Shown here one piece after another: positions 1-31,944 of a DNA stretch of 64,000 bases. The stretch covers positions 496,087 to 560,086 of the forward strand of contig CBFFRQ010000062.1 of assembly GCA_965644315.1 (NCBI GenBank), written 5' to 3'. Source of the DNA: Caecitellus pseudoparvulus. Its lineage: Eukaryota; Protista; Bigyra: Bicosoecida. Under the pieces are notes generated by a model, which worked only from the letters and a program-made list of their open reading frames with translations, was not told the DNA's origin and did no database searches. How positions within the stretch are numbered: position 1 is the stretch's first letter; each line of letters begins with the position of its first letter. Position numbers and translations under genes: made by a program.

Positions 1-3000
1 CTGTCATCGGTCGCTGGGACGCTGCTAGGCGCTGTGTGCTTGCTTTGGGCTGTGTGCTCCGACGCAAGCTTCCAGAGTCAGTGAGTGGCAAGCGACGATG
101 CATTTCACGTGCACGATGCCTGGCGTGCCGATGGCACTTCTCCAAAGTTGTTCCCATACACGACCGCGCCCACCACTTTGCAGGGGCCGGTTTCATTCTC
201 ACAGCACTCTAGCAACGGCGCGACGTGGCCGCGCTTCGACTCAGCGGCAATCAAGAACCAAGGAAAAACTTTCGATTGCTCTGTTTGTGTTCCTGTGGGT
301 CTTCTCTATCCCCATGCTCGTCACGCTGAGCCGCATGCTGGCTTGCTTCCCCGCCCTGGACCCAGCGGTCCGGGCTCCTCACCTCATCCAGCGATGGGGC
401 ACCGCCACCAACGCCATCTGGGGCAAGCCGGGAGCGCTGCTGCGGAGCACGGTGTTGCCACTGAGCACGCCCCTTGAGCACGGCGTGAGCATGGTGCCGG
501 CGATGTTCGGGGGCGTGGAGGCGTGCTACACGGGCTGGCACCTGGTGCATGCAGGGGTGTCAATGGCATGCCTTGGCCTGGTGAATGGCCTCTGCGTGCT
601 TGGTCGTCTCATGATGGCTTTCCCTGACCCGACACTGCTGGGCAGCCGGTCTTTTGCGGAGGAAAACTTGACGGCCTCCCTCGGCGTACGGTGGGCTGTG
701 CTTCTGGACATCGGCCTTGTCTTCAACACAGCACTGGCGCTAACTGTCATTGCGGAATTCTTCCCATCATGGGCTCTAGGGTCCCTCCTCCCTTTGATTG
801 GCGTGCTGTACCCTGCGTGGACGCTCCACAGGCAGGTGCATGTGAACCCTCGACAGTTCAGAATCTGGTCTGCCGTTTGCTCAGCCATGGTGACGACTGG
901 CCTCTGCAGCATGTTCATCGCAGGGGGCAGCACGGTGGACTACTTTGCCTTCGTGTCAGTTCTAGGGCTGGCCACCATCATCGTCGGTGCGGCGTCTGTT
1001 GACAGCTTCAGGCAGCGGGTGCTGGCCAAATCCCACGTGCAACTGTCAGTGCACGCACAGCTGTTCGTAGCAACTCTGCACGAGTCCAGGCGCTTCAGTA
1101 AGCGCCTTGCACGAGACCTCTTTGGGCGAGACACTGCGACAGTGGAAGTGTCCCGTGCACTGGCCCTGGCAGCTGGATGTGGCCCACAAGTGTGGAGTTC
1201 CGCTGACATGGCCCAGCTTCGATCTGCAGCCCACATTGCCCGCCTGCGGACTGCCCTCGCCGACAACCCCGCTCACGCCATCATCGCCCGCATGCGCCGC
1301 CTGCACCCCGACTCTGCCACCGCCGCCATGTACGAAGCCATGTGGCGCGGCAGTCCCTGGAGCGGGCACGGCGTGGGCGGCGAGGTGGCGGCCCTGCGAC
1401 GCCTGTGGGCGCTCACGCCTGCCCCCGACTTCCGCGTGTACATCTTGCACCGCCTGCAGTGTCTGTGGCGCCTGGAGAGCGCCGCCATGCTGGGGCTGGT
1501 GCGCCGGGCTGAGGTGCAGGGGCGCATGACGCTGGGTGGCTTAGTTGCGGCGGCTGGGCGACTGCGTGTGGCTGTGCAGGATGCGCAGGGAGGGGCGGGA
1601 GCAGGCAAGGGCCGGCGCGTGAGCGGCAGCGAGGCGTGGGAGCACAGCGCCGCATCGGCACACTGGGTGATGCGCGAGGTGCGCAGTGTGGTGGCAGCAG
1701 CTGGTGCTCGGTACGAGTACTTGCGCAGCGTGGGGGGCATGCCTGGGCAGACGCGCCGGCAGTTCGAAGTGGCAGCGGTGGAAGGCGCGGTGGCTGGGCG
1801 CGAGGTGGGTGCTGGCGAGGCAGGGGGTATGGGCGCTGTGGTGAAGGGTGGTGGTGGGTCGGGTGTCGTGCGGGGTGCGTCCGGTGCGCTGGGTGGGTGG
1901 GTGCAGTTTGTGGGTCGAGGTGGGCAGGGCAAGGAGCCCCGGCAGCCCGTGCTGTGGGCAGAGGTGAGTGGCACTGGCAGCACACGGGGCATGGTGCTGT
2001 CAGTGAGCGAGGGCATGGTGAGGCTGCTGGGGTGCAGCAGTGAGGGCGAGCTGGTGGGGCGAGGGTGGGGCGAGGTGATGGGCCTGGGTGGGGATGTGTG
2101 GTGGGGCGGCGTGGTCGCGAAGGGGCTGACGCCGGGGGACGTGGGTGTGCCGCGGTGTGTGAAGCTGGGTCGGCAGGGGCAGGAGGGCGTGGCGTGCCAG
2201 GTGTGTGTGTTGGAGGGCTGGGCGTTGGGCGGCGGGGGTCCTGAGGTGCGGTGGGTGGTGCTTGTGGCTGTACAGGGGGATGGCGGTGGTGGCGGTGGTG
2301 GCGGTGGCGAGATGGAGGAGGGTGATGTTGTCGAGGGGGGCGGTGAGCATGTGGCGGGGGATGGGGGTGCGGGTATGCAGGGTTGGGCAGTGCAAGCGGT
2401 GCGTTTGAGCAGTGCGAGCTGGAAGTCGGCGGGAACTTCCCACGCCGCATGGGGGTCCAACATAGCATGTATCATCATCATGCTCATTGGGTACATGTCG
2501 GTGGTACTCACCAACCTTGACACATCGCTTGGAGGGTCCACAGGATTGCAAGTGGTTGGGCCTCGTGCCTTCTGGCGAGCCAGCTGGGCCAGCGACGCTG
2601 CCTCCACGTGCCTCGCACTGGGCACCATCAACGCCTCCCGCCCCCATGGCACGTCGCAGGACAGTGACGCACAAGTGGCGCACCTGCTGGATGTGTGGTC
2701 GGGCGGGCTCCGTCAAGGCAGCCATGTGATGGCAGAGTACCGGGAGCCGCGGGCGTTCTTCGACGAGGGCAAGGTGGCCCGCGTGTTTGGTGCAGTGATG
2801 GTGGATGAGGTGGTGACTGTGGGGGGTGCGGAGGGGAATGTCAGTGTGATGGGCGGGGGGGTATTGTCGATGCATGCGGCAGGTGGGGGCACGGGTGGCG
2901 TGGGAGGGTGGGGCGAGGTGACGGCGGCGTTGAACGTGAGCGGGTCGGTGTTGCAGGGGAGCGCGACTCGCTTCCTTGAGGCGCGAGGAAACTTCGACCT

Positions 3001-4113
3001 GCTTAGAGGTACTGTTGGTGCATTTACTGTCATTGGGGCAACGTATCTGGCAAGTATTTTTGTAGAGCGCTGGATGCAGCGTGCCGAGACCCGTGCTGAG
3101 CGGGGCGAGGACAAGGCCAGTGACATGCGCTCACGGCCCCTGCTGCACAGCGGGTCGCTGGTGTGGGCGACATGCGCGTCTGGTGTGCCGCTTGTGGTGA
3201 TGTTTCTCGTCGTGTTCGTGACAAGCCGACTGGCCAGCCCGACGGGAGGTGCGCTCACGTTCATGGGTCGTGCCACATCTGGTGCCGTCGGACACCTCAC
3301 CTCCACATCCACCTCCCTCCTCCAAACCCACATCGACTTGATGCGCGGCCAACCCATCCACCCGCCGCTCCTGCTCGAAGCCCAGCAACACCTGGCTGCA
3401 GCGCAGTGGTGGGCGCTGCAGGCCGGTGCCATTGCTGGGCAGCAGGACCACAGTCGGGAGGATGTCGTGGGTGTGCTGAGCCGAGCCATGCTGCGTGATG
3501 CATGTGGTCTACTGGGCGTGGTGGAGGGGGGCGACATGCAGGCCGTGGCAAGGGCCAGTGCATACACGCCTGACGGCGTGGCGGGTCTGTGGAGCAGTGG
3601 ATGGGGCGAGTCGTACCGATCACAGTGTGGTGGTGCGGGGGGAGGCGTGCTGTCGACGGGGGGCGTGACACGGGGTGTGCTGTGGGTGGCTGGGCACATG
3701 GAGCAGGTGGTGGGCGTGATGGCGAGGTGTGCGGGTGTGGGGGGCGGTGGGAACGCGACGGCAGAGGCGGCGTGTGTGGGCGGGAGGGGGTGGATCTGGC
3801 GGGGGCTGTGGGGGGGATGGGGAGTGGTGGTGGCGGGCTGGGGGAGGTGTTGGATGTGAGTGTGGTGCAGCTGGGCATGGTGCGGAGCGCGGTGGATTGG
3901 CTGGTGCTGGTTGGGTATGCTGCCATCGAGGCCGGCAGCTATACGCTGTATTGGGCTGCGCTGTACATTCCATTGGCACTCAACTTTGTCATTTTCCTTG
4001 GTGTTGTGCTCCCCATGGTCAGGGCGAGGAGTGCCAACGTAGTTGCTCTTCAGCTTCGAAGCGTTTTGAGAGGGCTTGGGGCGCGTGTTCAATCATCCAA
4101 AGTAGAGGTTTAG
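1..4113 (+). CDS. TmcB/TmcC-like multi-pass membrane protein with TPR-like segment and degenerate PAS domain, copy 1 (5' partial; apparent -1 frameshift near 3781-3790)
   Basis: Frame-1 stretch 1-80 (LSSVAGTLLGAVCLLWAV) joins ORF 98..3859 through a GTGAGT donor at 81 and an in-frame AG acceptor at 183 or 204. Motifs: CYTGWHLVH, RRLHPDSATAAMY, PDFRVYILHR and PAS-like GMVLSVSEGMVRLLGCSSEGELVGR. The true C-terminus continues in ORF 3589..4113 (GVDLAGAVGG...), matching copies 2 and 3. Family name from motif recall. Confidence 0.7.
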
Positions 4114-7100
4114 CCCACGCAAGGTGACAGCCCGTTCACCAACGTTGAAGGCTGCGAAGCTCCCTTGGGATTTTCGTTTGCCGGTCATGCCTTCTCAAGT
4201 GCGAACGCGAAGTATTGTTCAGTTGTGCATCGAGACACCTGCAGCTACCTCTGTGACAGCCTCAGCCGCGGCACAAATTCATGTCAATGGCCTAGTCTAG
4301 AGTGCTCCACGTCGATCATGCATTCCTGGTCTGTTGATTCTGCTTGGTGGATTCTCACCGAGAGATGAAGTACCAAGCTCCTGGAAACAGTGGCAATGAT
4401 GATAGTACTGTCGCTCTTGACACGGTTCACAATGCAGCAAAGAGACCCTTCAAGATGCACTTTCTCGCACTCGGACACCACAGAAGCACGAGTTACTTTG
4501 CCACACATGGCATTAGGTCTCTCTGGCTATCCCTTGTGTTGGAATCTGCTCCTGCATGCAGAGCAACAGTCCGCAGAAGGGTCAGGGCTAGGAGATTGCT
4601 GCTGCGAGAGCGCACCACAGGGCGAACACACACCCAAAACACAAGCCAGCTCACCATAAGCGGGAGCACCACCTCGAACATGAGCAACGAAGGTATGGAA
4701 AGGTCGATGTCACCCCCAGCAACCAGCACCAGCCAATCCACCGCGCTCCGCACCATGCCCAGCTGCACCACACCCACATCCAACACCTCCCCCAGCCCGC
4801 CACCACCACTCCCCATCCCACCCACAGCCCCCGCCAGATCCACCCCTCCCTCACCCACACACGCCGCCTCTGCCGTCGCGTTCCCACCGCCCCCCACACC
4901 CGCACACCTCGCCATCACGCCCACCACCTGCTCCATGTGCCCAGCCACCCACAGCACACCCCGTGTCACGCCCCCCGTCGACAGCACGCCTCCCCCCGCA
5001 CCACCACACTGTGATCGGTACGACTCGCCCCATCCACTGCTCCACAGACCCGCCACGCCGTCAGGCGTGTATGCACTGGCCCTTGCCACGGCCTGCATGT
5101 CGCCCCCCTCCACCACGCCCAGTAGACCACATGCATCACGCAGCATGGCTCGGCTCAGCACACCCACAACATCCTCACGACTGTGGTCCTGCTGCCCAGC
5201 GATGGCACCGGCCTGCAGCGCCCACCACTGCGCTGCAGCCAGGTGTTGCTGGGCTTCGAGCAGGAGCGGCGGGTGGATGGGTTGGCCGCGCATCAAGTCG
5301 ATGTGGGTTTGGAGGAGGGAGGTGGATGTGGAGGTGAGGTGTCCGACGGCACCAGACGTGGCGCGACCCACCTGAACCGTGACCCTTTTAGAGCTCCCAG
5401 TGGACCGGCTCACAAGGAACACGACGAGAAACATCACCACAAGCGGCACACCAGACGCGCATGTCGCCCACACCAGCGACCCGCTGTGCAGCAGGGGCCG
5501 TGAGCGCATGTCACTGGCCTTGTCCTCGCCCCGCTCAGCACGGGTCTCGGCACGCTGCATCCAGATCTCAAAGAAAGGTGCAACTGCTAACGCAAGGAAC
5601 ACGAAGAGGAAGGCCCCAACTGTCCCTTGGACAAAATCGGCCGCCCACTTCATCTCGAGAAAGCGAGTCGCGCTCCCCTGCAACACCGACCCGCTCACGT
5701 TCAACGCCGCCGTCACCTCGCCCCACCCTCCCACGCCACCCGTGCCCCCACCTGCCGCATGCATCGACAATACCCCCCCGCCCATCACACTGACATTCCC
5801 CTCCGCACCCCCCACAGTCACCACCTCATCCACCATCACTGCACCAAACACGCGGGCCACCTTGCCCTCGTCGAAGAACGCCCGCGGCTCCCGGTACTCT
5901 GCCATCACATGGCTGCCTTGACGGAGCCCGCCCGACCACACATCCAGCAGGTGCGCCACTTGTGCGTCACTGTCCTGCGACGTGCCATGGGGGCGGGAGG
6001 CGTTGATGGTGCCCAGTGCGAGGCACGTGGAGGCAGCGTCGCTGGCCCAGCTGGCTCGCCAGAAGGCATGAGGCCCAACCACTTGCAATCCTGTGGACCC
6101 TCCAAGCGATGTGTCAAGGTTGGTGAGTACCACCGACATGTACCCAATGAGCATGATGATGATACATGCTATGTTGGACCCCCATGCGGCGTGGGAAGTT
6201 CCCGCCGACTTCCAGCTCGCACCGCTCAAACGCACCGCTTGCACTGCCCAACCCTGCATACCCGCACCCCCATCCCCCGCCACATGCTCACCGCCCCCCT
6301 CCACGGCATCGCCCACCTCCATCTCGCCACCGCCACCACCGCCACCACCGCCATCCCCCTGTACAGCCACAAGCACCACCCACCGCACCTCAGGACCCCC
6401 GCCGCCCAACGCCCAGCCCTCCAACACACACACCTGGCACGCCACGCCCTCCTGCCCCTGCCGACCCAGCTTCACACACCGCGGCACACCCACGTCCCCC
6501 GGCGTCAGCCCCTTCGCGACCACGCCGCCCCACCACACATCCCCACCCAGGCCCATCACCTCGCCCCACCCTCGCCCCACCAGCTCGCCCTCACTGCTGC
6601 ACCCCAGCAGCCTCACCATGCCCTCGCTCACTGACAGCACCATGCCCCGTGTGCTGCCAGTGCCACTCACCTCTGCCCACAGCACGGGCTGCCGGGGCTC
6701 CTTGCCCTGCCCACCTCGACCCACAAACTGCACCCACCCACCCAGCGCACCGGACGCACCCCGCACGACACCCGACCCACCACCACCCTTCACCACAGCG
6801 CCCATACCCCCTGCCTCGCCAGCACCCACCTCGCGCCCAGCCACCGCGCCCTCCACCGCTGCCACTTCGAACTGCCGGCGCGTCTGCCCAGGCATGCCCC
6901 CCACGCTGCGCAAGTACTCGTACCGAGCACCAGCTGCTGCCACCACACTGCGCACCTCGCGCATCACCCAGTGTGCCGATGCGGCGCTGTGCTCCCACGC
7001 CTCGCTGCCGCTCACGCGCCGGCCCTTGCCTGCTCCCGCCCCTCCCTGCGCATCCTGCACAGCCACACGCAGTCGCCCAGCCGCCGCAACTAAGCCACCC

Positions 7101-8307
7101 AGCGTCATGCGCCCCTGCACCTCAGCCCGGCGCACCAGCCCCAGCATGGCGGCGCTCTCCAGGCGCCACAGACACTGCAGGCGGTGCAAGATGTACACGC
7201 GGAAGTCGGGGGCAGGCGTGAGCGCCCACAGGCGTCGCAGGGCCGCCACCTCGCCGCCCACGCCGTGCCCGCTCCAGGGACTGCCGCGCCACATGGCTTC
7301 GTACATGGCGGCGGTGGCAGAGTCGGGGTGCAGGCGGCGCATGCGGGCGATGATGGCGTGAGCGGGGTTGTCGGCGAGGGCAGTCCGTAGGCGGGCAATG
7401 TGGGCTGCAGATCGAAGTACTGTTTTTCCGCAATTGTCTACGCTCTCTGGCCTCGTCCCATTGATCGCTTCAAGTGCGAGAGCTGCTTGGATCGGGCTGG
7501 TGTCCTTCCCCAAGACGCGGTCCAGGGCAGATCTGAAGGCCAAAAAGTTTACGTTGATGGCCCGCAAGAAAAGCTGGCCAGGAACAGTGAGCTTCGTTGC
7601 AACGGAGGATGCAATCCAGTTGTGTGTGGTGATCAAGAGCGCCGCCACAAGCACGAGCAAGATGGAGCCAACTGCCACAAGCGACAGCGTGAGGTCAACT
7701 CCGCGCTGCCCCAGCGTTGTGATGCCCACGATGAGCCCAGAAGTCAGCATGGACGAGCAGGCACCACCCCACAGACCGAGTTGGTTTGGGTTTGCATGAG
7801 GCTGGGTTTGAGAGGACACCACCAAGTACAGCCCACCCACAGCTGGCGCGAGGAAGGACATGAGCCAAAGTGGAATCAAGTCCAACAGGAGAACGAAGTT
7901 AATGGCACTCGAGGCAGTGAAGAGCACTTCAAGAACGAGTGAGACCCGCTGGTTTGTTGTGGTGGTAATGCCCTCTGAGGCGTTCCGCTGGGCAGTCAGC
8001 CTGGCTGGATGGGGCAGGCTGTGCAGCAGGCGAACCACAAGGGACAGGTTCGTGATGGTTGAAAGGCACACGGCGCTGATGAGCACGTGCACCAGGTGCC
8101 AGCCCGTGTAGCACGCCCCCACGCCCCCGAACATCGCCGGCACCATGCTCACGCCGTGCTCAAGGGGCGCGCTGAGCGGGAAAACCGTGCCTTTGGACAG
8201 CGCTCCCGGCTCGCCCCAGATGGCGTTGGTGGCGGTGCCCCATCGCTGGATGAGGTGAGGAGCCCGGACCGCTGGGTCCAGGGCGGGGAAGCAAGCCAGC
8301 ATGCGGC
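330..8307. repeat. Large imperfect inverted repeat (arms ~330-3913 and ~4720-8307, ~0.8 kb unrelated spacer) formed by two convergent paralogues
   Basis: Mirror-image ORFs on opposite strands with a constant coordinate sum of 8634 (1273/7361, 2487/6147, 3451/5183, 3589/5045). Direct comparison shows near-identity in the shared blocks. Confidence 0.95.
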
Positions 8308-8797
8308 CCAGAATCAGCGTCAGGGGGACACTGAGTGCCCAGAAAGTGAAGTGAAGGACTCCGCTCAGGAGTTTCTGCCGCTGTCGCAGCGGCTGCAGCC
8401 AAGTTTCTATGGCTGGAGGAAGGAGACCTGCGCCTTTCCCCCGCCCGAACGAGGAGCTCTCCTTTGATCTCCCAACCAGAAAGGTTGGAGTCAGGAGCCC
8501 AGGCAACAGCAGCACCACCCAGGCTGTGCCGGCGACAGCGACGGAGCCGAGCCAAAGCCCGTAAAACACGGCAGGAGAAAGGTCCACGTCAGCTCGCCCG
8601 GCAACGAGATACACAGAAAGTCGCCCAAATAGCGTCAGGCCGCTGTTTTCTTGCCCCACTGCCAGTGCAGGCACGTACGCGGCCAGGCATACTACCTGAA
8701 CTGCCCGCACCAGCACCAGGGTTTGCATGAATGCATGGCTGAGTCGGGGAAGGCGCAGAACCGCTAGGATCCAATGCCACAATGGGATAGAGGGCAT
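4493..8797 (-). CDS. TmcB/TmcC-like multi-pass membrane/PAS protein, copy 2 (intact, single ORF)
   Basis: ORF 4493..8821, first ATG at 8797 (MPSIPLW). Same motifs as copy 1; many hydrophobic helices N-terminally and several C-terminally. Confidence 0.8.
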   Translation of the reverse strand: MPSIPLWHWILAVLRLPRLSHAFMQTLVLVRAVQVVCLAAYVPALAVGQENSGLTLFGRLSVYLVAGRADVDLSPAVFYGLWLGSVAVAGTAWVVLLLPGLLTPTFLVGRSKESSSFGRGKGAGLLPPAIETWLQPLRQRQKLLSGVLHFTFWALSVPLTLILGRMLACFPALDPAVRAPHLIQRWGTATNAIWGEPGALSKGTVFPLSAPLEHGVSMVPAMFGGVGACYTGWHLVHVLISAVCLSTITNLSLVVRLLHSLPHPARLTAQRNASEGITTTTNQRVSLVLEVLFTASSAINFVLLLDLIPLWLMSFLAPAVGGLYLVVSSQTQPHANPNQLGLWGGACSSMLTSGLIVGITTLGQRGVDLTLSLVAVGSILLVLVAALLITTHNWIASSVATKLTVPGQLFLRAINVNFLAFRSALDRVLGKDTSPIQAALALEAINGTRPESVDNCGKTVLRSAAHIARLRTALADNPAHAIIARMRRLHPDSATAAMYEAMWRGSPWSGHGVGGEVAALRRLWALTPAPDFRVYILHRLQCLWRLESAAMLGLVRRAEVQGRMTLGGLVAAAGRLRVAVQDAQGGAGAGKGRRVSGSEAWEHSAASAHWVMREVRSVVAAAGARYEYLRSVGGMPGQTRRQFEVAAVEGAVAGREVGAGEAGGMGAVVKGGGGSGVVRGASGALGGWVQFVGRGGQGKEPRQPVLWAEVSGTGSTRGMVLSVSEGMVRLLGCSSEGELVGRGWGEVMGLGGDVWWGGVVAKGLTPGDVGVPRCVKLGRQGQEGVACQVCVLEGWALGGGGPEVRWVVLVAVQGDGGGGGGGGGEMEVGDAVEGGGEHVAGDGGAGMQGWAVQAVRLSGASWKSAGTSHAAWGSNIACIIIMLIGYMSVVLTNLDTSLGGSTGLQVVGPHAFWRASWASDAASTCLALGTINASRPHGTSQDSDAQVAHLLDVWSGGLRQGSHVMAEYREPRAFFDEGKVARVFGAVMVDEVVTVGGAEGNVSVMGGGVLSMHAAGGGTGGVGGWGEVTAALNVSGSVLQGSATRFLEMKWAADFVQGTVGAFLFVFLALAVAPFFEIWMQRAETRAERGEDKASDMRSRPLLHSGSLVWATCASGVPLVVMFLVVFLVSRSTGSSKRVTVQVGRATSGAVGHLTSTSTSLLQTHIDLMRGQPIHPPLLLEAQQHLAAAQWWALQAGAIAGQQDHSREDVVGVLSRAMLRDACGLLGVVEGGDMQAVARASAYTPDGVAGLWSSGWGESYRSQCGGAGGGVLSTGGVTRGVLWVAGHMEQVVGVMARCAGVGGGGNATAEAACVGEGGVDLAGAVGGMGSGGGGLGEVLDVGVVQLGMVRSAVDWLVLVAGGDIDLSIPSLLMFEVVLPLMVSWLVFWVCVRPVVRSRSSNLLALTLLRTVALHAGADSNTRDSQRDLMPCVAK

Positions 8798-9878
8798 GGC
8801 TGCTGTATGACCCCTGTTCAATCACCCTTGCGGGCTCTCTCTGACTGCCGGCTGCCCGGCGCAGCGAGCGGGAGAATCGGCTCGCTCTCGCCAACACGCC
8901 ACGCACGCTTCCGAATCACTTGACGGCCGTGAACGGCACGCGAGGGTCTGGCAAGCTCAGGCTTGCGAGACTATGACGAGAACGCCACGCCTTGTGTCTC
9001 TCCCTGTGACCGCTTGGCGCCATGTGCGGAGAGTGCGTGGCAGCTGTGAATTGGTCAACTTCTCTGGCTGCGCGGCTGCAGCGTGAGCGCATTGGCTCTG
9101 GAAGCTGGTGGTTGGTGACAGACGGCCGAGGGCAAGGCGGAACCGTGAGTCCGTGGCAGCCGAAGGCGCTGGTTGTGAGCTACCTTCGCTGGGCTAGTTT
9201 CCTGCCCCGCGGGAGCAAGCTATATGTTGCCGCGAGAGGCAAAGATGGCACGCTGGAGTGCAGGGGGACGAGGCAGGCTTGAAGCTCACGCACAGCTTGC
9301 CGTCGAGAGCGAAGTGGGTGTCACATGTCGGGATGGAGAGCTGCAGTGGGCGCAATGAGGGGGGAGGCGCTTGGGGCCGTGGTCTTCCCTCCAGACCCAA
9401 AGCGGGTGTGCGCCCTCTCTCCGCAGTGTGACGTGGCTCAAGCCACTAAAGTGTGCCACCGTTGGCGTCGACCAGTTTCCGCACCAAAACCTGAGGGATG
9501 CTGGCTTTCGGGCCGATATCTTGGCCAACTGAAGAAGAACTTGAGAAGTACACTCTACATACTAAAGAATCACCAAACGGCCTGCATTTATAATCCGAAG
9601 ACTCACAGGAGCTGCGCAGGGTGTCTTGATAGGGTTGAAGCAGGCTCCTTACCAAAATCCGCATTTGTTCACACGGCGCTGCACGAACGGTGCGCGAGCA
9701 GCCCCTTGGAACAAAATCACTAAGTCCTCACAAATGCGTACAGCGCCAAATATTTCGTGCCTTGTCCAAACGTGCAAGTGTCCCCCAGGCTGCGAAGCTG
9801 GCTTGGCTGGCTCCTTTGGCGATTGAATTGGAGCGACATTGCTTGGGACGGTTGTGCCCCTTTCCTGCCTGTGGCGCA

Positions 9879-19905: not shown

Positions 19906-20118
19906 GCATCTCGGCAGCGTGCTGAAGCCGACTTGCTGTAGCTAATGATTGAAGGGTGTGTGCGCGACCAGGCACAGCCCCTGTGCCCGTCTTGGATTTG
20001 CGTGGCTTGGCCTGCAGCAACAGCGCCAGTTGCGCCACCTGCACACAATCCAACACACCCCCCGACACACACCGCCGACACACAGCAGGGTTGTGCGAGT
20101 CCCACCTCCTGCACCACC

Positions 20119-22947
20119 ATGCCGAAGCGCAGGAAGAGCTCCGGCGGCAGTGCCGCCTTCCCCAAGGGCGGCACGCGGGTGTGGTTCGATGTGGGTGTCG
20201 GCAGCAAGTCCGCAGGGCGCCTGGAGTTCGAGCTGTTCGACAGCGTCACGCCCAAGACGGCGGCCAACTTCAAGGCCCTGTGCACTGGCGAACGAGGACG
20301 TGGCAAGTTCGGCAAGCCCCTGCACTACAAGGGCTGCCCTTTCCACCGCATTATTCCAGGTGCGTGTCCCACTGGCGCTGTTCCACGCCGAACTTGTCAG
20401 CTCACCCAGCGCCGCCCGCATGCAATTTCAGAGTTCATGATTCAAGGTGGCGACTTTACAAACTTTGATGGCACTGGTGGCGAGTCCATCTACGGAAAGA
20501 CCTTCAAGGACGAGGTGTGTGGCGCGCACTCATTGCGGCGCGTGAACGGCGCAATTTCCGCACGCTGCGCCGCCTCGCCCCTGCCGCAGAACTTCAAGCT
20601 GAAGCACACCGTGCCTGGCCTGCTGTCCATGGCCAACGCGGGGCCGAACACGAACGGGTCCCAGTTCTTCATCACCACGGCAGCGACACCCTGGCTAAAC
20701 GGCAAGCACGTCGTGTTTGGGCGGGTTGTCAGCGGCATGCCGCTGGTGGCCACGATGGAGCGCCTCGGAACACAGTCCGGCAAGACGCGCAAGCGCGTTT
20801 TCATCATTGACTGTGGCGTCGTGGGCGACGACAGCGCTGGTGCTGCCCCAGCAGCCGCTGCCGCTGCCGCTGCCGAGCCAGCCACTGGCGGTGTCAAGCG
20901 TGCGCGCGAGCAGCCAGCGCCAGTGGCTGCCGATGCAGGAGAAGGCAAAGCTGCCGCCGCACCCGAGGCGCAGGCAGCTGAGGATGCAGCTGCCGCCAAG
21001 GCTGCACGCAAGGCGGAACGGGCGGCGGCAAAGAAGGCCCGGCGCGAGGCAGAGGCTGCAGCGGAGGCTGAAGCAGAGGCGTCCTCCCAGGCGGCTGCCG
21101 CGGCATCCGGGGGAGGGGGCAGCGACTCTGCTGCCCAGGAAGTGTCTGGTGGCTCTGCCGCCCGCGGTGGCGCCCCCCAGAAGGACGGCTTCTTCTCCGG
21201 GCAGCGCTTCGACTCGCTGCCCCTCAGTGAGGGCACGCTGTCGGCCCTGGAGGAAGCCGGGTACTCCACCATGACCAAGATCCAGGCGCAAGCCATTCCC
21301 CCCCTGCTGCAGGGCAAGGATGTGCTGGGCGCCGCCAAGACGGGCAGCGGCAAGACGCTGGCCTTCCTCATCCCCGCCATGGAGATCCTGGCCAAGGCGC
21401 AGTTCAAGGCGCGCAATGGGCTGGGCGCCGTCATCATCACGCCCACGCGTGAGCTGGCCCTGCAGATTTACCAAACCCTGCGGGAGCTCATGGGGCACCA
21501 GAAGCAGACGCACGGCCTGATCATGGGCGGCGCCAACCGGCGCAACGAGGCGGAGAAGTTGGAGAAGGGCGTCAACATCCTCGTGGCCACGCCAGGGCGC
21601 CTGCTGGACCACCTGCAGAACACCCAGCGCTTCCTCTTCGACAACCTGCAGTGCCTCATCATCGACGAGGCTGACCGCATCCTGGAACAGGGCTTCGAGG
21701 AGGAGATGAAGGCTATCATCAAGGCCCTGCCCAAGACGCGCCAGAGCATGCTCTTCAGCGCCACGCAAACGCAGAAGGTGGAGGACATGGCCCGCCTGGC
21801 CATCCGAGGCACCCCCGTGTACGTGGGCGTGGACGACCGAGACGCCATCGCCACGGTGAGCACACTGGAGCAGGGGTATGTCGTGTGCCCCGCCGACCAG
21901 CGCCTGCTGCTGCTGTACACGTTCCTCAAAAAGTACAGCAAGAAGAAGATCATTGTGTTCTTCTCCTCCTGTGCCAGCGTCAAGTTCCACGCGGAGCTGC
22001 TGAACTACATCGACGTGCCGGTGCTGGACATCCACGGGAAGCAAAAGCAGGCGAAACGCACCACGACCTTCTTCGAGTTCTGCAATGCGAAGACCGGCAC
22101 GCTGCTGGCCACTGACGTCGCGGCGCGTGGGCTGGACATTCCTCACGTCGACTACGTCATCCAGTTCGACCCCCCTGATGATCCACGCGAGTACATTCAC
22201 CGTGTCGGGCGAACAGCTCGAGGTGCCACTGGCGCCGGCCGAGCCCTGCTCTTCCTCATGCCCGAGGAGCTGGGCTTCCTCAAGTACCTGCGCGCTGCCA
22301 AGGTGACCCCCAACGAGTATGTCTTCCCTACCTCCAAGCTTGCCAAGGTGCAGGTACGTGCACGTGTCGTGCTGTGCCTTTACATCTGTGTAGTTCTCGT
22401 GTCTGTGCCAATGTGTGAGCTGAGGAGGTCGATGATGTCTTACCAAGATCTGTTCTGAACAACTCATGTCGATTGGGCTCTGCCCACCAACCCCTGAGAC
22501 CTTCCCTGCTCCCCACTGCTGCCTCGCACGCACTGTCTCGCCGCTCTCGCTCCCCGCCACACCTTCCCTCGCCCCCTGGCCCCGCAGGACCAACTTGAGA
22601 AACTCATCTCCAAGAACTACTTCCTGCACAAGAGCGCCAAGGAGGGCTACAAGGGGTACATCCTCTCCTACTCCTCCCACGCGCTGAAGCACATCTTCAA
22701 CGTGCACGCCATTGACCTGGGCGGTCTGTCCAGGTCCTTCGGTTTCGCGACACCCCCTCGGGTGCCCCTGAACCTGAAAACCACCGGCGCCAAGGTGCGC
22801 AAGCGCGGCGGCGGTGGCGGCTTCGGGGACAAGGACCGCAAGTCTGTGCACGATAAGATCCGGGCGCAGGGCAGCGGGCATGCCTTCTCCGCCGCAAACC
22901 CGTACGGCAAGCGTGGCGGCGATGATGGGCGGCAGTTCCAGCACTGA
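20119..22947 (+). CDS. HAS1: Fusion protein: N-terminal cyclophilin PPIase plus C-terminal DEAD-box helicase HAS1/DDX18
   Basis: Cyclophilin motifs: [58 protein letters not shown]. Helicase motifs: [46 protein letters not shown]. Introns 20360-20431, 20515-20589 and 22354-22587; last exon has the HAS1-type [19 protein letters not shown]. Confidence 0.92.
22426..22502 (+). ncRNA. Intronic box C/D snoRNA (predicted LSU rRNA 2'-O-methylation guide)
   Basis: Terminal stem AGGTC/GACCT, box C-like ATGATGT (22432-22438), D' CTGA (22455-22458) and D CTGA (22494-22497). Guide ACCAAGATCTG is complementary to the conserved LSU sequence CAGAUCUUGGU. Confidence 0.8.
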
Positions 22948-27472: not shown

Positions 27473-30400
27473 CTAACACATGTCTTCCTTGACGCTCTTC
27501 ACTTTGATGCCTTCTGATGCAAGGCGCATGGAGCCCAGCTCACCCACCATCCACACACCTCGCAAGCCTCCGACACGCTTGCCCACGGCGGGCAGCACCA
27601 GCCAGCTAAACACGCTCCATGCCAGCACCACGCCAATGCAAAGGCACAAGACCGTGCCTGCGATGCCGGCACTGTACACAGAACCGCTGCCCACTGCCAG
27701 GCTAGCCTCAAGGAGTGCCAACACTACGCCCAGCTGCACCACGCCCACATCCAACACCTCCCCCAGCCCGCCACCACCACTCCCCATCCCACCCACAGCC
27801 CCCGCTAGATCCACCCCTCCCTCACCCACACACGCCGCCTCTGCCGTCGCGTTCCCACCGCCCCCCACACCCGCACACCTCGCCATCACGCCCACCACCT
27901 GCTCCATGTGCCCAGCCACCCACAGCACACCCCGTGTCACGCCCCCCGTCGACAGCACGCCACCCCCCGCACCACCACACCTTGACCGGTACGCCTGCAT
28001 GCGGAGGCTGGTCAGCGTGGAGGTCAGTCCTCGGGGGGCATACAGACTGCCACTCGCAGCTCCACCCAGGGGCGCGTCACCATCCAGCACGGAGCCAAGG
28101 AGGCACGCATCGTGATGCACCGCATCGTACACAGCAGCCTGCGCCGCCGACACGGGCGGGACTGCAGAAAGCGCAGGCAGGCGCGGAAGAGAGTCGAGGC
28201 GGAACGTCCACCAGCGCGCAGCGTGAACACTGTCAGCGGCCACTGCAAGCTGAGGCGAGGACAGGGGGCGGCCGTCGTGCAAGTCAGCTGCTGCAGACAG
28301 CACCCCTGCCAGGGCGATGTGGGTGTGCCCGATGCTGGCGACGCTGGCCACTGCCACCGCCCTGAAGCCAGTGTCGATGCTGCTTTGTGTCATGTCCACA
28401 AGCAGGATGCCGATGAAGCACGAGAAGAACACCGCCCCCACAGCCTGCAGCGGGCCCAGCAGCGAGCCGTGGGCGCGACACAGCCTGCCGCTGCAAAGCA
28501 CTTTCACTGGCCGGGCGCTGATGCCCAGAGCTGCAGCAGCAGCAGACACAGCCTCGTTCTCTGTGCGCTGCAGCCTCGCCTCGGCGCAGCACGCGGTGGC
28601 AGTGGACACCGCGATGATCGTCAGCATAGCGACAGTACCGCCAAGCACCTGCCCAGCGCTGACCTGCATCAATGCAGCCTCGACATCCTGGTACATGCTG
28701 GTCCCTGTCTCATTCATGGCTGCAAGGGCGGTTGTGTCGTTGCTGGTCATGCTCTGCCAGGCGCTGCCCGGAGTCTGGTCATGCTGTGCGCGGAACAGCA
28801 TGCCATCCACTGCCGCCATGACAGGCTGTGACTGGGACGAAGTGTCGGCGTTTGCATCGCGCAGGATGCGGTTCTGCCACTCCTGCACGGCTGGTGCCCC
28901 AACAAGGTAGTCAAGAACGTCGGCACGTGCGAGGAGGTCCATGACATCACGGCGTGAAGTGATCCAGTCTCCGACAGCTTCGTCAGCCGCCTGGGCAAGC
29001 TGCGAATGGGTGGAATTGCCGGCCAGCTGTACCATGGAGGCCCACTGGCGGCTTTGGTGCCCATGCGTCGCGCAGCGCCACAGTGCCAGGGGGGTCAAGA
29101 GCCGCTGGCCATGTGTGCTGTCCGGGCCAATGACGAGGTTGGGCAGCACGACAGCGCAGAAAACGCACACAACCAACACCATGGCCACACGTTGCTGCCA
29201 AAGTGCGCCCCGATACACCACGTGACTGGTCACTGGCTGGGCGGCCACATGCAGAGCTTGCACGGCCGCCTGCTTGAGGCGTGGCTCGCTCGAACGCATT
29301 GTGTGGCCGGAAAGAGCGTCTGAATGTTGGCAAGCCTGAGTGGGCTGACGAGGGGTGACGCGATCACCCTGCACAGCTACAAGCACCACCCACCGCACCT
29401 CAGGACCCCCGCCACCCAGCGCCCAGCCCTCCAACACACACACCTGGCACGCCACGCCCCCCTGCCCCTGCCGACCCAGCTTCACACACCGTGGCACACC
29501 CACGTCCCCCGGCGCCAGCCCCCTCGCGACCACGCCGCCCCACCACACATCCCCACCCAGGCCCATCACCTCGCCCCACCCTCGCCCCACCAACTCGCCC
29601 TCACTGCTGCACCCCAGCAGCCTCACCATGCCCTCGCTCACTGACAGCACCATGCCCCGTGTGCTGCCAGTGCCACTCACCTCTGCCCACAGCACGGGCT
29701 GCCGGGGCTCCTTGCCCTGCCCACCTCGACCCACAAACTGCACCCACCCAGCCAGCAGCTTGGCAGGATCGGCAAGTGCTTCGGGGGCTCCACTTTCTTT
29801 CAGTCCGTTTTGAGCAGAAACTTGGCAGGTTTCGGCGCGGAGGGCAAGCCCCGAATCGAGCCCAAACCCGCCAGTCTGCGCCGCATCTGTGGCTTCAACA
29901 GCCGCCTCCACTGACGTAGCAGCCACCTGGATGGGTGACTGCGCGCTGCTCGCATTGGAGGATCGCTGCGCAGCAGCACTGAACTGCACAGCCGCAGAGG
30001 CAAGGGCCCGCAAGTCCCGCACCAGGCGGCTGCCTGCGTGCAGGATGTTGTTTGTGGCAACGCCTCCAGCACTGGAGACACCTTTCAGGCGGCGGAGGGC
30101 AAAGTTCAGGTCGGACGTGAAGCGCGCCTGGGTATCGGTGGCTTTGGCCGCGCTTGCACGAAGCAGTGCAGAGCGCTGCACGACGAGCCCCAGCATGGCG
30201 GCGCTCTCCAGGCGCCACAGACACTGCAGGCGGTGCAGGATGTACATGCGGAAGTCGGGGGCAGGCGTGAGCGCCCACAGGTGTCGCAGGGCCGCCACCT
30301 CGCCACCCACGCCGTGCCCGCTCCAGGGACTGCCGCGCCACATGGCTTCGTACATGGCGGCGGTAGCAGAGTCGGGGTGCAGGCGGCGCATGCGGGCGAT

Positions 30401-31944
30401 GATGGCGTGAGCGGGGTTGTCTGTGAGGGCAGCCCGCAGGCGAGCTACACGGCACGGCGACTTTACGGCAGTTGCGTGAGACGCTGTCCAAATGGAGGGG
30501 CCGAACTGGTTCAACTCCGCCAATGCCTTCCCAACCTCTCGAGTGCTCGCTTCCAGCCCGATAACCTTGGCCGTTGCAGCTTTGGCTGCCTCATGTGTCT
30601 CGGCCAGCGCACACATGCTCAGCGCTTCGACTCGCACCAGGTGCTCGCGGAATGACCCGAGAATACTGTGCCTGACTGTGTCAACAGTCGCCCCTCCAAA
30701 CACCACAACAGCTAGGATGATTATCATGGTCATGAGGGACACGTCCACTCGATGGTCTGAGGCAAGCGCCACTCCAGCGCTGACGGAGCTGGCGCCCAGT
30801 GCGGCGCAGGTCGCCGCCCACACCCGGAATTGGTGCGGGTTCGCGTGGATGTTGAACCACAGAGCTCCCGTGATGTATGACACTGCGACCTGCGGCACAA
30901 GGGCGGGCCCCACCCACAGTGGCAAGAGGTCCAACAGCGCGCCAACTGTCAGGGTCGCCCCTGCAATGATGCCAACGTCCAGAAGGAGAGCCCATCGAAT
31001 GGACAGGACTGCAGCAATGGGGAGAGAGGTTGCGGGCAAAGATGTAAATAGTTCCGGGTCTGGCAGCGCATACATCAGCCGCCCCGGCACTGAGGCAAAG
31101 AGGATGACGAAGAAGCACGCGGCGCTGATGAGCACGTGCACCAGGTGCCAGCCCGTGTAGCACGCCTCCACGCCCCCGAACATCGCCGGCACCATGCTCA
31201 CGCCGTGCTCAAGGGGCGTGCTCAGCGGCAACACCGTGCTCCGCAGCAGCGCTCCCGGCTCGCCCCAGATGGCGTTGGTGGCGGTGCCCCATCGCTGGAT
31301 GAGGTGAGGAGCCCGGACCGCTGGGTCCAGGGCGGGGAAGCAAGCCAGCATGCGGCCCAGCACAATCAAGCAAGGTATGGATGCAGCCCAGAATCCCCCG
31401 TAAATGACCAGGCCAACGACCAATGCGAGCGTGGAGGATTTTGTCGAGGCGGTGAACCTGCGAGGTGAGTCGCGGGGGCCAGGTTTGGGCGTTGCCGTCG
31501 GCGGGGACAGCGTGACGGGACGTACAGCTTCACTCTCTGAGCCCACGGTGCATGTTCTCTGTCTTTCTGACGTGATGTCCCCGCCCCTTTGCCGGCGAGC
31601 TGTGCAGCGCCGACGGCTGCTGAGGATGCAGTTGCGGCAGCCGCCCACCGCCACCAGCACCACACCGCAGCCAAGGCGCCAAGCATGGCAAGGGCGACGA
31701 AGACGGACGTCATCCATGCTAAGTAGAAGACTAAGGGGGACATGTCAAGGTCCAGTCGGCCGCCCAGGATGACAGCCGCGAGGCGCCCCAGGACTGCCAA
31801 GTCTGGACTGCCTACGTTGGCCCCCATCGCTGAAAAGTAGAACGCCGCTACCAGCAACTGCGCAGCTTTGCAGGCCACCACAATACTTTGCAGGCGCGAG
31901 GACGGTAAGGGAAGCAGGAAGAGGGGGAGAATTACTGCCTCCAT
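27473..31944 (-). CDS. TmcB/TmcC-like multi-pass membrane/PAS protein, copy 3
   Basis: ORF 31366..31944 (homologous to the N-terminus of copy 2) joins ORF 27473..31717 in frame via a 68-nt intron 31525-31458 (GTACGT...CTCACCTCGCAG). Shares four near-identical DNA blocks with copies 1 and 2. Confidence 0.8.

Follow-up and report, generated by a model that had tools for sequence, protein, structure and literature searches.

Three closely related genes of the bicosoecid Caecitellus pseudoparvulus, each encoding a putative TmcB-like membrane sensor, are built as mosaics in which near-identical DNA blocks alternate with islands of deep divergence. In all probability they represent mosaic concerted evolution: ancient duplicates subject to ordinary interlocus gene conversion, whose islands are kept apart by lost homology and probably by selection. 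The genes lie within a 64,000-nucleotide stretch (the window) that forms the end of contig C62 (CBFFRQ010000062.1) in a genome assembly of 30.6 Mb and 215 contigs (GCA_965644315.1). Comparing the window with itself revealed three close copies, all inside it: c1 and c2, arranged tail to tail, and c3, located 23 kb away from this pair. No near-identical DNA block links the trio to four more distant paralogues on contigs C80 and C18 or to a fragmentary match on C15. For c1 to c3, we analyzed the main open reading frames (ORFs), keeping 5′ exons separate rather than joining them into spliced models.

By blastn, c2 matches c1 at 96% across 2.7 kb. Two-state segmentation of this comparison divided it into stretches of 98–100% identity and stretches of 40–46% (Table 1, with block positions in c1 coordinates), thereby confirming to within a few bases the block alternation that a sequence-only reading of this DNA had proposed. 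Of the gene as aligned between the neighboring c1 and c2, ~70% is homogenized. Copy c3 takes part in only four segments, namely blocks A (330–549), B (1241–1497), C (1888–2277) and D (3625–3876), at 96–99% identity, and is ~45% identical elsewhere. The islands have conserved lengths in c1 and c2 (96/96 bp for V2, 667/670 bp for V1). Block borders are ragged and differ between copy pairs; eight of them, when compared, had no motif in common, and an internal repeat search detected no border repeats, only short chance-level or low-complexity matches.

Silent sites reveal recurrent interlocus gene conversion among c1, c2 and c3. At four-fold degenerate positions, c1 and c2 differ at 3/386 sites in the long homogenized arm versus 23/36 in V1. 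Their longest identical run at such sites was 243, whereas none of 20,000 permutations exceeded 155 (p < 1e-4), and clustering of identity beat all 20,000 permutations in each of the three copy pairs (p < 1e-4). Within blocks A and D, all three possible groupings (12|3, 13|2 and 23|1) occur as runs: in block A, c1 goes with c3 over 440–519 and c2 with c3 over 550–565, while block D contains both 12|3 and 23|1. These conflicting groupings imply that exchange was repeated and multi-way. Tree distances between c1 and c2 range from ~2.3 changes per site in V1 to zero in blocks B and C. The V1 proteins are 23% identical and saturated at silent sites, and the three copies still cluster in the V1 tree, with weak support (84/89). 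Accordingly, the earlier proposals of ancient paralogy, of ongoing segmental conversion and of incongruent per-block phylogenies were all borne out.

The shared tracts have elevated GC at four-fold sites (p 3e-4 for c2, p 1e-5 for c3), which argues for long-lived conversion and not for one recent copying event. The blocks common to all three copies are also the segments closest to the distant paralogues (30–47% protein identity to the C80 paralogue vs 14–24%), with block A reaching the highest value of all blocks (47%), as expected if conversion persists where homology survived. This coincidence with the most conserved family motifs might suggest that extreme purifying selection on the protein is solely responsible for the identical blocks. 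We give that explanation practically no weight, however, as silent sites are as identical as replacement sites and the poorly conserved Gly-rich linkers are likewise 100% identical between c1 and c2.

An assembly or polishing collapse, which the sequence-only reading had named as an outcome that would undo its interpretation, was addressed using contig graphs of four public sequencing runs (X1, X3, X5 and X9, with X5 being a marine metagenome), compared over 3930–9500. G-rich homopolymers are error-prone, c1 contains a probable one-base error near 3785, and X1 or X3 is possibly the assembly's own source, all of which would be compatible with collapsed or mis-polished repeats; the other two runs are not. 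In the graphs, side branches diverge and rejoin exactly at block borders and bear the c1 and c3 versions of the islands, and X1, a marine metagenome and a run from a differently labeled organism agree on the branch points. One 19.5-kb contig connects block A of c2 to block D of c3 in agreement with the assembly, and a separate, independent strain contig covers the 5′ third of c2, from the start through V1, at 98.6% identity. Depth in X1 was 75–89 on unique stretches and 96–230 on shared blocks (~2–3x); as contig depth does not equal copy number, it is the junctions that carry the evidential weight. A step from 46% to 99% identity also exceeds what polishing can do. With the block junctions reproduced and the shared blocks at ~2–3x depth, assembly collapse is very unlikely to have caused the block pattern, and an artifact of either kind is scarcely credible. 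Individual single-nucleotide differences within the homogenized arms may still be errors.

The trio encodes proteins with an N-terminal membrane bundle, followed by a TPR region, a PAS domain and two membrane-anchored four-helix ectodomains. A Pfam scan of c1–c3 returned no match, and the trio is not among the 33 matches to PF25474 (TPR_TmcB) in the genome, falling short of that family's cut-off. Aligning the trio with 20 PF25474-positive genes of the same genome by hhalign nevertheless gave P 99.4% and E 4e-21 over 331 columns spanning the membrane bundle and TPR region; a profile search reached the PF25474 proteins P0012 and P0019, and the trio's neighbors in the Atlas are TPR_TmcB clusters (score 0.97). 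On this sequence evidence the trio is best classed as a divergent TmcB-like subfamily, in line with the earlier assignment. A structural model of the N-terminal half comprises a helical membrane region, TPR-like helices and a PAS fold, of which residues 569–675 match the FixL and LOV PAS folds (probability 1.0, E ~0.01; TM-score to FixL 0.71, normalized by target); the C80 paralogue has a weak PAS_9 match. For the C-terminal half, the model has a pair of four-helix bundles set between membrane helices, with NasR (4akk) as best structural match (Z 16.2, 276 residues aligned, root-mean-square deviation 4.7) and Z ~10–11 to chemoreceptor ligand domains. Model confidence is modest (pLDDT 61–67, and 61 for the C-terminal half) and helical bundles match easily; Foldseek found no significant match for the C-terminal half. 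A nitrate-binding P-box (G-x-x-R) was not evident at the matching position in the family alignments, and no catalytic output domain was seen in c1–c3. The models would thus fit a likely function as membrane sensor or scaffold. Word-indexed homologue searches and scans of Joint Genome Institute (JGI) metagenomes, by protein and by a DNA word from block B, yielded no matches, and the partial c2 protein of a second strain had no exact record.

Mapping the blocks onto this domain order placed most of the N-terminal membrane bundle in V1, the helices that follow each ectodomain in V2 and V4, and the exit from the membrane into ectodomain 2 in V3. Islands make up 30% of the length and contain 123/190 residues of hydrophobic segments (circular-shift p 0.04). 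Conversely, c1 and c2 have the PAS domain, the TPR region and most of both ectodomains in common; it is their membrane cores that differ, which is the reverse of what a ligand-binding repertoire would show. The variable segments therefore do not look like the receptor specificities that the sequence-only reading had taken them for, since the differences are mostly membrane or juxtamembrane.

Nor do the two islands compared between strains appear hypervariable. In a second strain, V1 of c2 carries six silent and three replacement changes (~1.3%, the same as its flanks, albeit on small numbers) and V4 of c3 differs by 0.8%, like its flanks; the variation in these two blocks is at background level and mostly silent. 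The exception is the spacer together with the c2 C-terminus including V4 (window 4135–4773), which is 8–10% diverged on two contigs of metagenome X5, compared to ≤ 0.4% for V1 and the 5′ flank; X1, X3 and X9 show no differences wherever they cover this region. Strain-divergence patches of 6–12% are likewise present at an unconverted paralogue locus.

The mosaic pattern recurs across the TmcB-like family, of which the genome holds at least 32 PF25474-positive genes. Comparing further sets over 3.3-kb loci each revealed the two-level patchwork in five other pairings (the C94 third copy, C44, C31, C86 and C30/C68), with tracts usually centered on the TPR region. These pairings are arranged in tandem, divergently, 280 kb apart or on different contigs, implying that the pattern is independent of inverted geometry. 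In four other pairs, four-fold GC was 0.78–0.80 in homogenized tracts versus 0.54–0.69 (p 1e-23). As a family rule, the notion that membrane helices are always the variable part was ruled out by homogenized N-terminal helices in C86 and C30/C68. It thus appears that some 40 uncharacterized TmcB-like putative sensors of a widespread marine heterotrophic stramenopile evolve by frequent segmental gene conversion, which calls for caution in duplication dating and in short-read assembly of this family. The preserved islands, in turn, offer a natural map of residues that possibly distinguish paralogues, and hence a practical entry point into a family for which functional data are almost nonexistent.

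A distinct property of the trio is a strong sense-strand G skew of up to 0.69, with many G4-type motifs (guanine-quadruplex type), both restricted to the converted tracts, at window 1500–3000, 3500–3913, 4650–5100, 5600–6950, 27600–28000 and 29350–29750. The skewed tracts encode Gly/Val-rich protein, the PAS domain included. Sense-strand G is 0.51–0.59 in segments BC, C and D, also at four-fold sites. Blocks A and B lack such a skew, and the homologous stretches of c3 that are unconverted show no imbalance. Across the window and six further loci, the homogenized tracts of the trio are the sole strong GC-skew patches, bar one marginal patch. Skew values in other converted pairs range from −0.22 to +0.40, and in singletons from −0.12 to +0.11. 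A general association of G skew with conversion was rejected (pooled p 0.44 in four other pairs). R-loops are favored by G skew of the non-template strand (PMC3787257), so the skew of the trio might either promote exchange or result from it.

The following scenario very probably accounts for these observations. The three genes are ancient local duplicates of a putative TmcB-like multi-pass sensor, among which homology-driven conversion, helped by proximity and the inverted arrangement, copies tracts wherever near-identity has survived; with c3, only the four most conserved family motifs have remained in this regime. Repeated conversion raised silent-site GC. The islands, in contrast, left the conversion regime long ago and are now too divergent to pair. 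V2 and V3 lie inside identical arms, where a tract anchored in both flanks might replace them; they are therefore probably kept by selection, the most plausible reason being a need for each paralogue's membrane helices to fit its own membrane bundle. Such co-adapted helix packing would be the likeliest selective barrier for the short islands, even if its signal is marginal. The net outcome would be two or three sensors with common soluble domains and private membrane cores.

Several observations weigh against this scenario. For V1 and V4, lost homology is explanation enough, and selection need not be invoked. The membrane enrichment of the islands is marginal and two membrane helices are homogenized, as is the N-terminal membrane region itself in the C86 and C30/C68 sets. 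An adjacent pair on C13 shows no conversion across the 3.3 kb compared. The G skew is not accounted for by ordinary GC-biased conversion. On the supporting side, X5 contains five ectodomain 2 variants foreign to the reference c1 and c2, on one contig at ~2x single-copy depth, and a block C variant that none of the three reference copies has is present in X5 and X9 at multi-copy depth. These fit concerted change within the species, but Logan contigs merge bubbles, which weakens the argument and renders it suggestive only.

The layout of the c1/c2 pair invites a more dynamic explanation, namely that crossovers between the inverted arms flip the center and thereby swap V2, V3 and V4 between the N-terminal bundles, generating chimeric sensors in the manner of a shufflon without dedicated recombinase. 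Such a switch would be compatible with the convergent orientation of the genes, whose identical arms (1757, 148 and 650 bp) are collinear, and with the contrast in X5 between the diverged center and the near-invariant V1 and 5′ flank; short-read graphs do not phase across the arms and so leave room for other combinations. We consider it unlikely, though: the data contain no recombinant combination, the sole phased piece from the second strain having the reference order V0-A-V1 of c2, the borders carry no signal, the 6–12% patches also affect an unconverted locus, and the same patchwork is found in direct, divergent and inter-contig pairs. No recombinase was detected among the scanned subset of window ORFs. 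It is likewise improbable that c1/c2 form a working combinatorial sensor locus in which G-skewed, R-loop-prone arms drive frequent exchange, and crossovers there combine the N-terminal bundle of one gene with the C-terminal membrane helices of the other to yield clone-level PAS/four-helix sensor variants, with identity residing in the membrane core; were this the case, the combinatorial principle would extend across the TmcB-like family of C. pseudoparvulus.

Alternatively, a recent duplication might have been followed by import of the divergent segments from silent donor cassettes, as in vlsE, msp2 or chicken immunoglobulin genes, and the abrupt borders and length-conserved islands do resemble cassette replacement. 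A search of the 30.6-Mb assembly identified no donor copy of any island, leading us to reject donor cassettes as decidedly unlikely. The raised silent GC of the shared blocks points to long-lived conversion and not to a recent copy, the islands are conserved between strains, and the trio still clusters, if weakly, in the V1 tree. The cassette-like diversified receptor repertoire of the sequence-only reading is consequently not upheld: there are only three close copies, the assembly holds no donors for the variable blocks, and the borders are ragged and signal-less. Mosaic concerted evolution by ordinary gene conversion remains the preferred reading.

Cassette-based antigenic variation (Borrelia vlsE, Anaplasma msp2, Neisseria pilE, trypanosome VSG) and plasmid shufflons combine constant and variable blocks, with G-rich, G4-prone sequence near the exchanged tracts. 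The trio differs from these systems in that no silent donors, single expression site, recombination signal or recombinase were found, and in that conversion strips variation from the constant blocks instead of adding it to the variable ones. Closer parallels exist among gene-converted duplicates. Divergence peaks within such duplicates are known from opsins, RHD/RHCE and protocadherins (PMC3924837), mosaic evolution with raised GC at third codon positions (GC3) has persisted for >100 million years in mammalian pairs (PMC2720389), and a similar mosaic exists in copepod GOT1 (PMC3728101). The trio is like these cases (human red/green opsins, RHD/RHCE, clustered protocadherins; BMP8A/B, DDX19A/B, TUBG1/2; Tigriopus GOT1p1/p2) in its homogenized silent sites, divergence islands, raised GC3 of converted tracts and constant copy number. 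It departs from them in the far deeper contrast within one long exon (99.5% beside 40–46%), in islands as short as 46–96 bp, in the three-way network, in the involvement of at least six sets in one family, and in the strong sense-strand G-over-C skew.

At the protein level, the trio resembles TmcB/TmcC-like proteins (PF25474; Dictyostelium tmcB) in its Cys/His membrane bundle, TPR, PAS and C-terminal membrane-anchored helical domains, but itself lacks a PF25474 match and a discernible catalytic output domain. For Dictyostelium, PMC8516963 and PMC12750705 cite a reported role in cyclic AMP (cAMP) signaling or sexual development. To the NIT four-helix modules of NarX/NarQ and NasR there is a likeness in fold only, as seen in a low-confidence model, and the G-x-x-R P-box that binds nitrate in those sensors (PMC8199190) is not evident in the trio. 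We found no report of mosaic gene conversion in the literature on TmcB-like genes. The trio is thus an extreme, recurrent instance of a long-known process in a little-known family, and not a new diversification system.

Table 1 Features of the TmcB-like trio and related sets. Positions refer to the window unless a locus is named.
Feature	Position	Strand	Other copies and identity	Content and remarks
Copy 1 (c1)	1–4113	+		TmcB-like sensor gene; ORF 29–3856; start ~265 bp upstream of the window
Copy 2 (c2)	4493–8797	−		Intact frame; ORF 8821–4496, 1442 codons
Copy 3 (c3)	27473–31944	−		ORF 31744–27476; probable 5′ intron, upstream N-terminal match in another frame
Block A	330–549	+	c2 8311–8088, c3 31361–31137; c1/c2 99% over 330–439 and 468–549	Common to all three; Cys/His loop of N-terminal membrane region; 440–467 is a low-identity 28-bp cluster, a variant private to c2
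Island V1	550–1216	+	c2 8087–7418; 46% DNA, 23% protein identity	Most helices of the N-terminal membrane bundle
Long homogenized arm	1217–2973	+	c1/c2 99.5%, 9 differences	TPR-like block B (also c3), helical linker, PAS block C (also c3), Gly-rich linker, one membrane helix, most of ectodomain 1; strong G skew from ~1500
Island V2	2974–3069	+	42%; 96 bp in both c1 and c2	End of ectodomain 1 and next membrane helix
Block E	3070–3217	+	c1/c2 100%; not shared by c3	148 bp; short loop and most of next membrane helix
Island V3	3218–3263	+	40%	~46 bp; membrane exit into helix 1 of ectodomain 2
Homogenized ectodomain 2	3264–3913	+	c1/c2 98%	Includes G-skewed block D, common to c3
Inverted-repeat center	3914–4719		40% (c1/c2 after 3913)	Unique, 806 bp; holds V4 of both genes (C-terminal membrane helix and tail, variable) and a 379-bp spacer
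Other sets with near-identical or patchwork tracts	L040/L041/L045 (C94), L046/L048 (C44), L049/L050 (C31), L058/L059 (C86), L060/L061/L063 (C68, C30)			

With respect to the individual gene structures, the N-terminal match of c1 lies upstream of its main ORF and in a different frame; a 5′ intron near 81–212 is probable, judging from GT/AG borders and frame alone. The frame of c1 breaks by one base at ~3781–3790, inside a G run; beyond it, a different frame runs on to 4113 and encodes what looks like an intact membrane helix and tail. This break near 3785 may be a one-base error, possibly from long reads.

The c1/c2 pair adjoins a gene for 5-aminolevulinate (ALA) synthase, whose nearest named relatives are those of Cafeteria roenbergensis (65%) and oomycetes (~63%), which by itself would point to a heterotrophic stramenopile host, probably a bicosoecid other than Cafeteria. 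Upstream of c1 lies an 1807-codon ORF (L033:1032–6452) with response-regulator, IQ, SAM and ankyrin domains that is kept in a related species. There (L068:5672–12397), both flanking genes are present and the TmcB-like gene between them is absent, indicating that the c1/c2 pair was gained or lost at that site. Marine metagenomes from several studies contain near-identical DNA, and contigs 97–99% identical are found in other assemblies. One of these, that of Symbiodinium sp. KB8 (L070, GCA_905221625.1), contains DNA 97% identical to the protist genome, which looks like contamination by C. pseudoparvulus or a close strain; its contig carrying the neighboring ALA synthase gene stops short of c2.

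Among the paralogues outside the window, the unconverted gene on C18 (L029:2307–6560) encodes a protein 91% identical to its second-strain counterpart, compared to 98% for two others, and its in-frame ORF terminates early in both strains. Toward the contig end (window 56000–64000), GC content falls abruptly to ~57%, and this region contains a 967-codon ORF without Pfam match and a 1429-codon ORF with a weak kinase match. Elsewhere in the window (19942–22455), a cyclophilin domain is in frame with a DEAD-box helicase, forming a gene of 837 amino acids that is also called in a second strain (L071).

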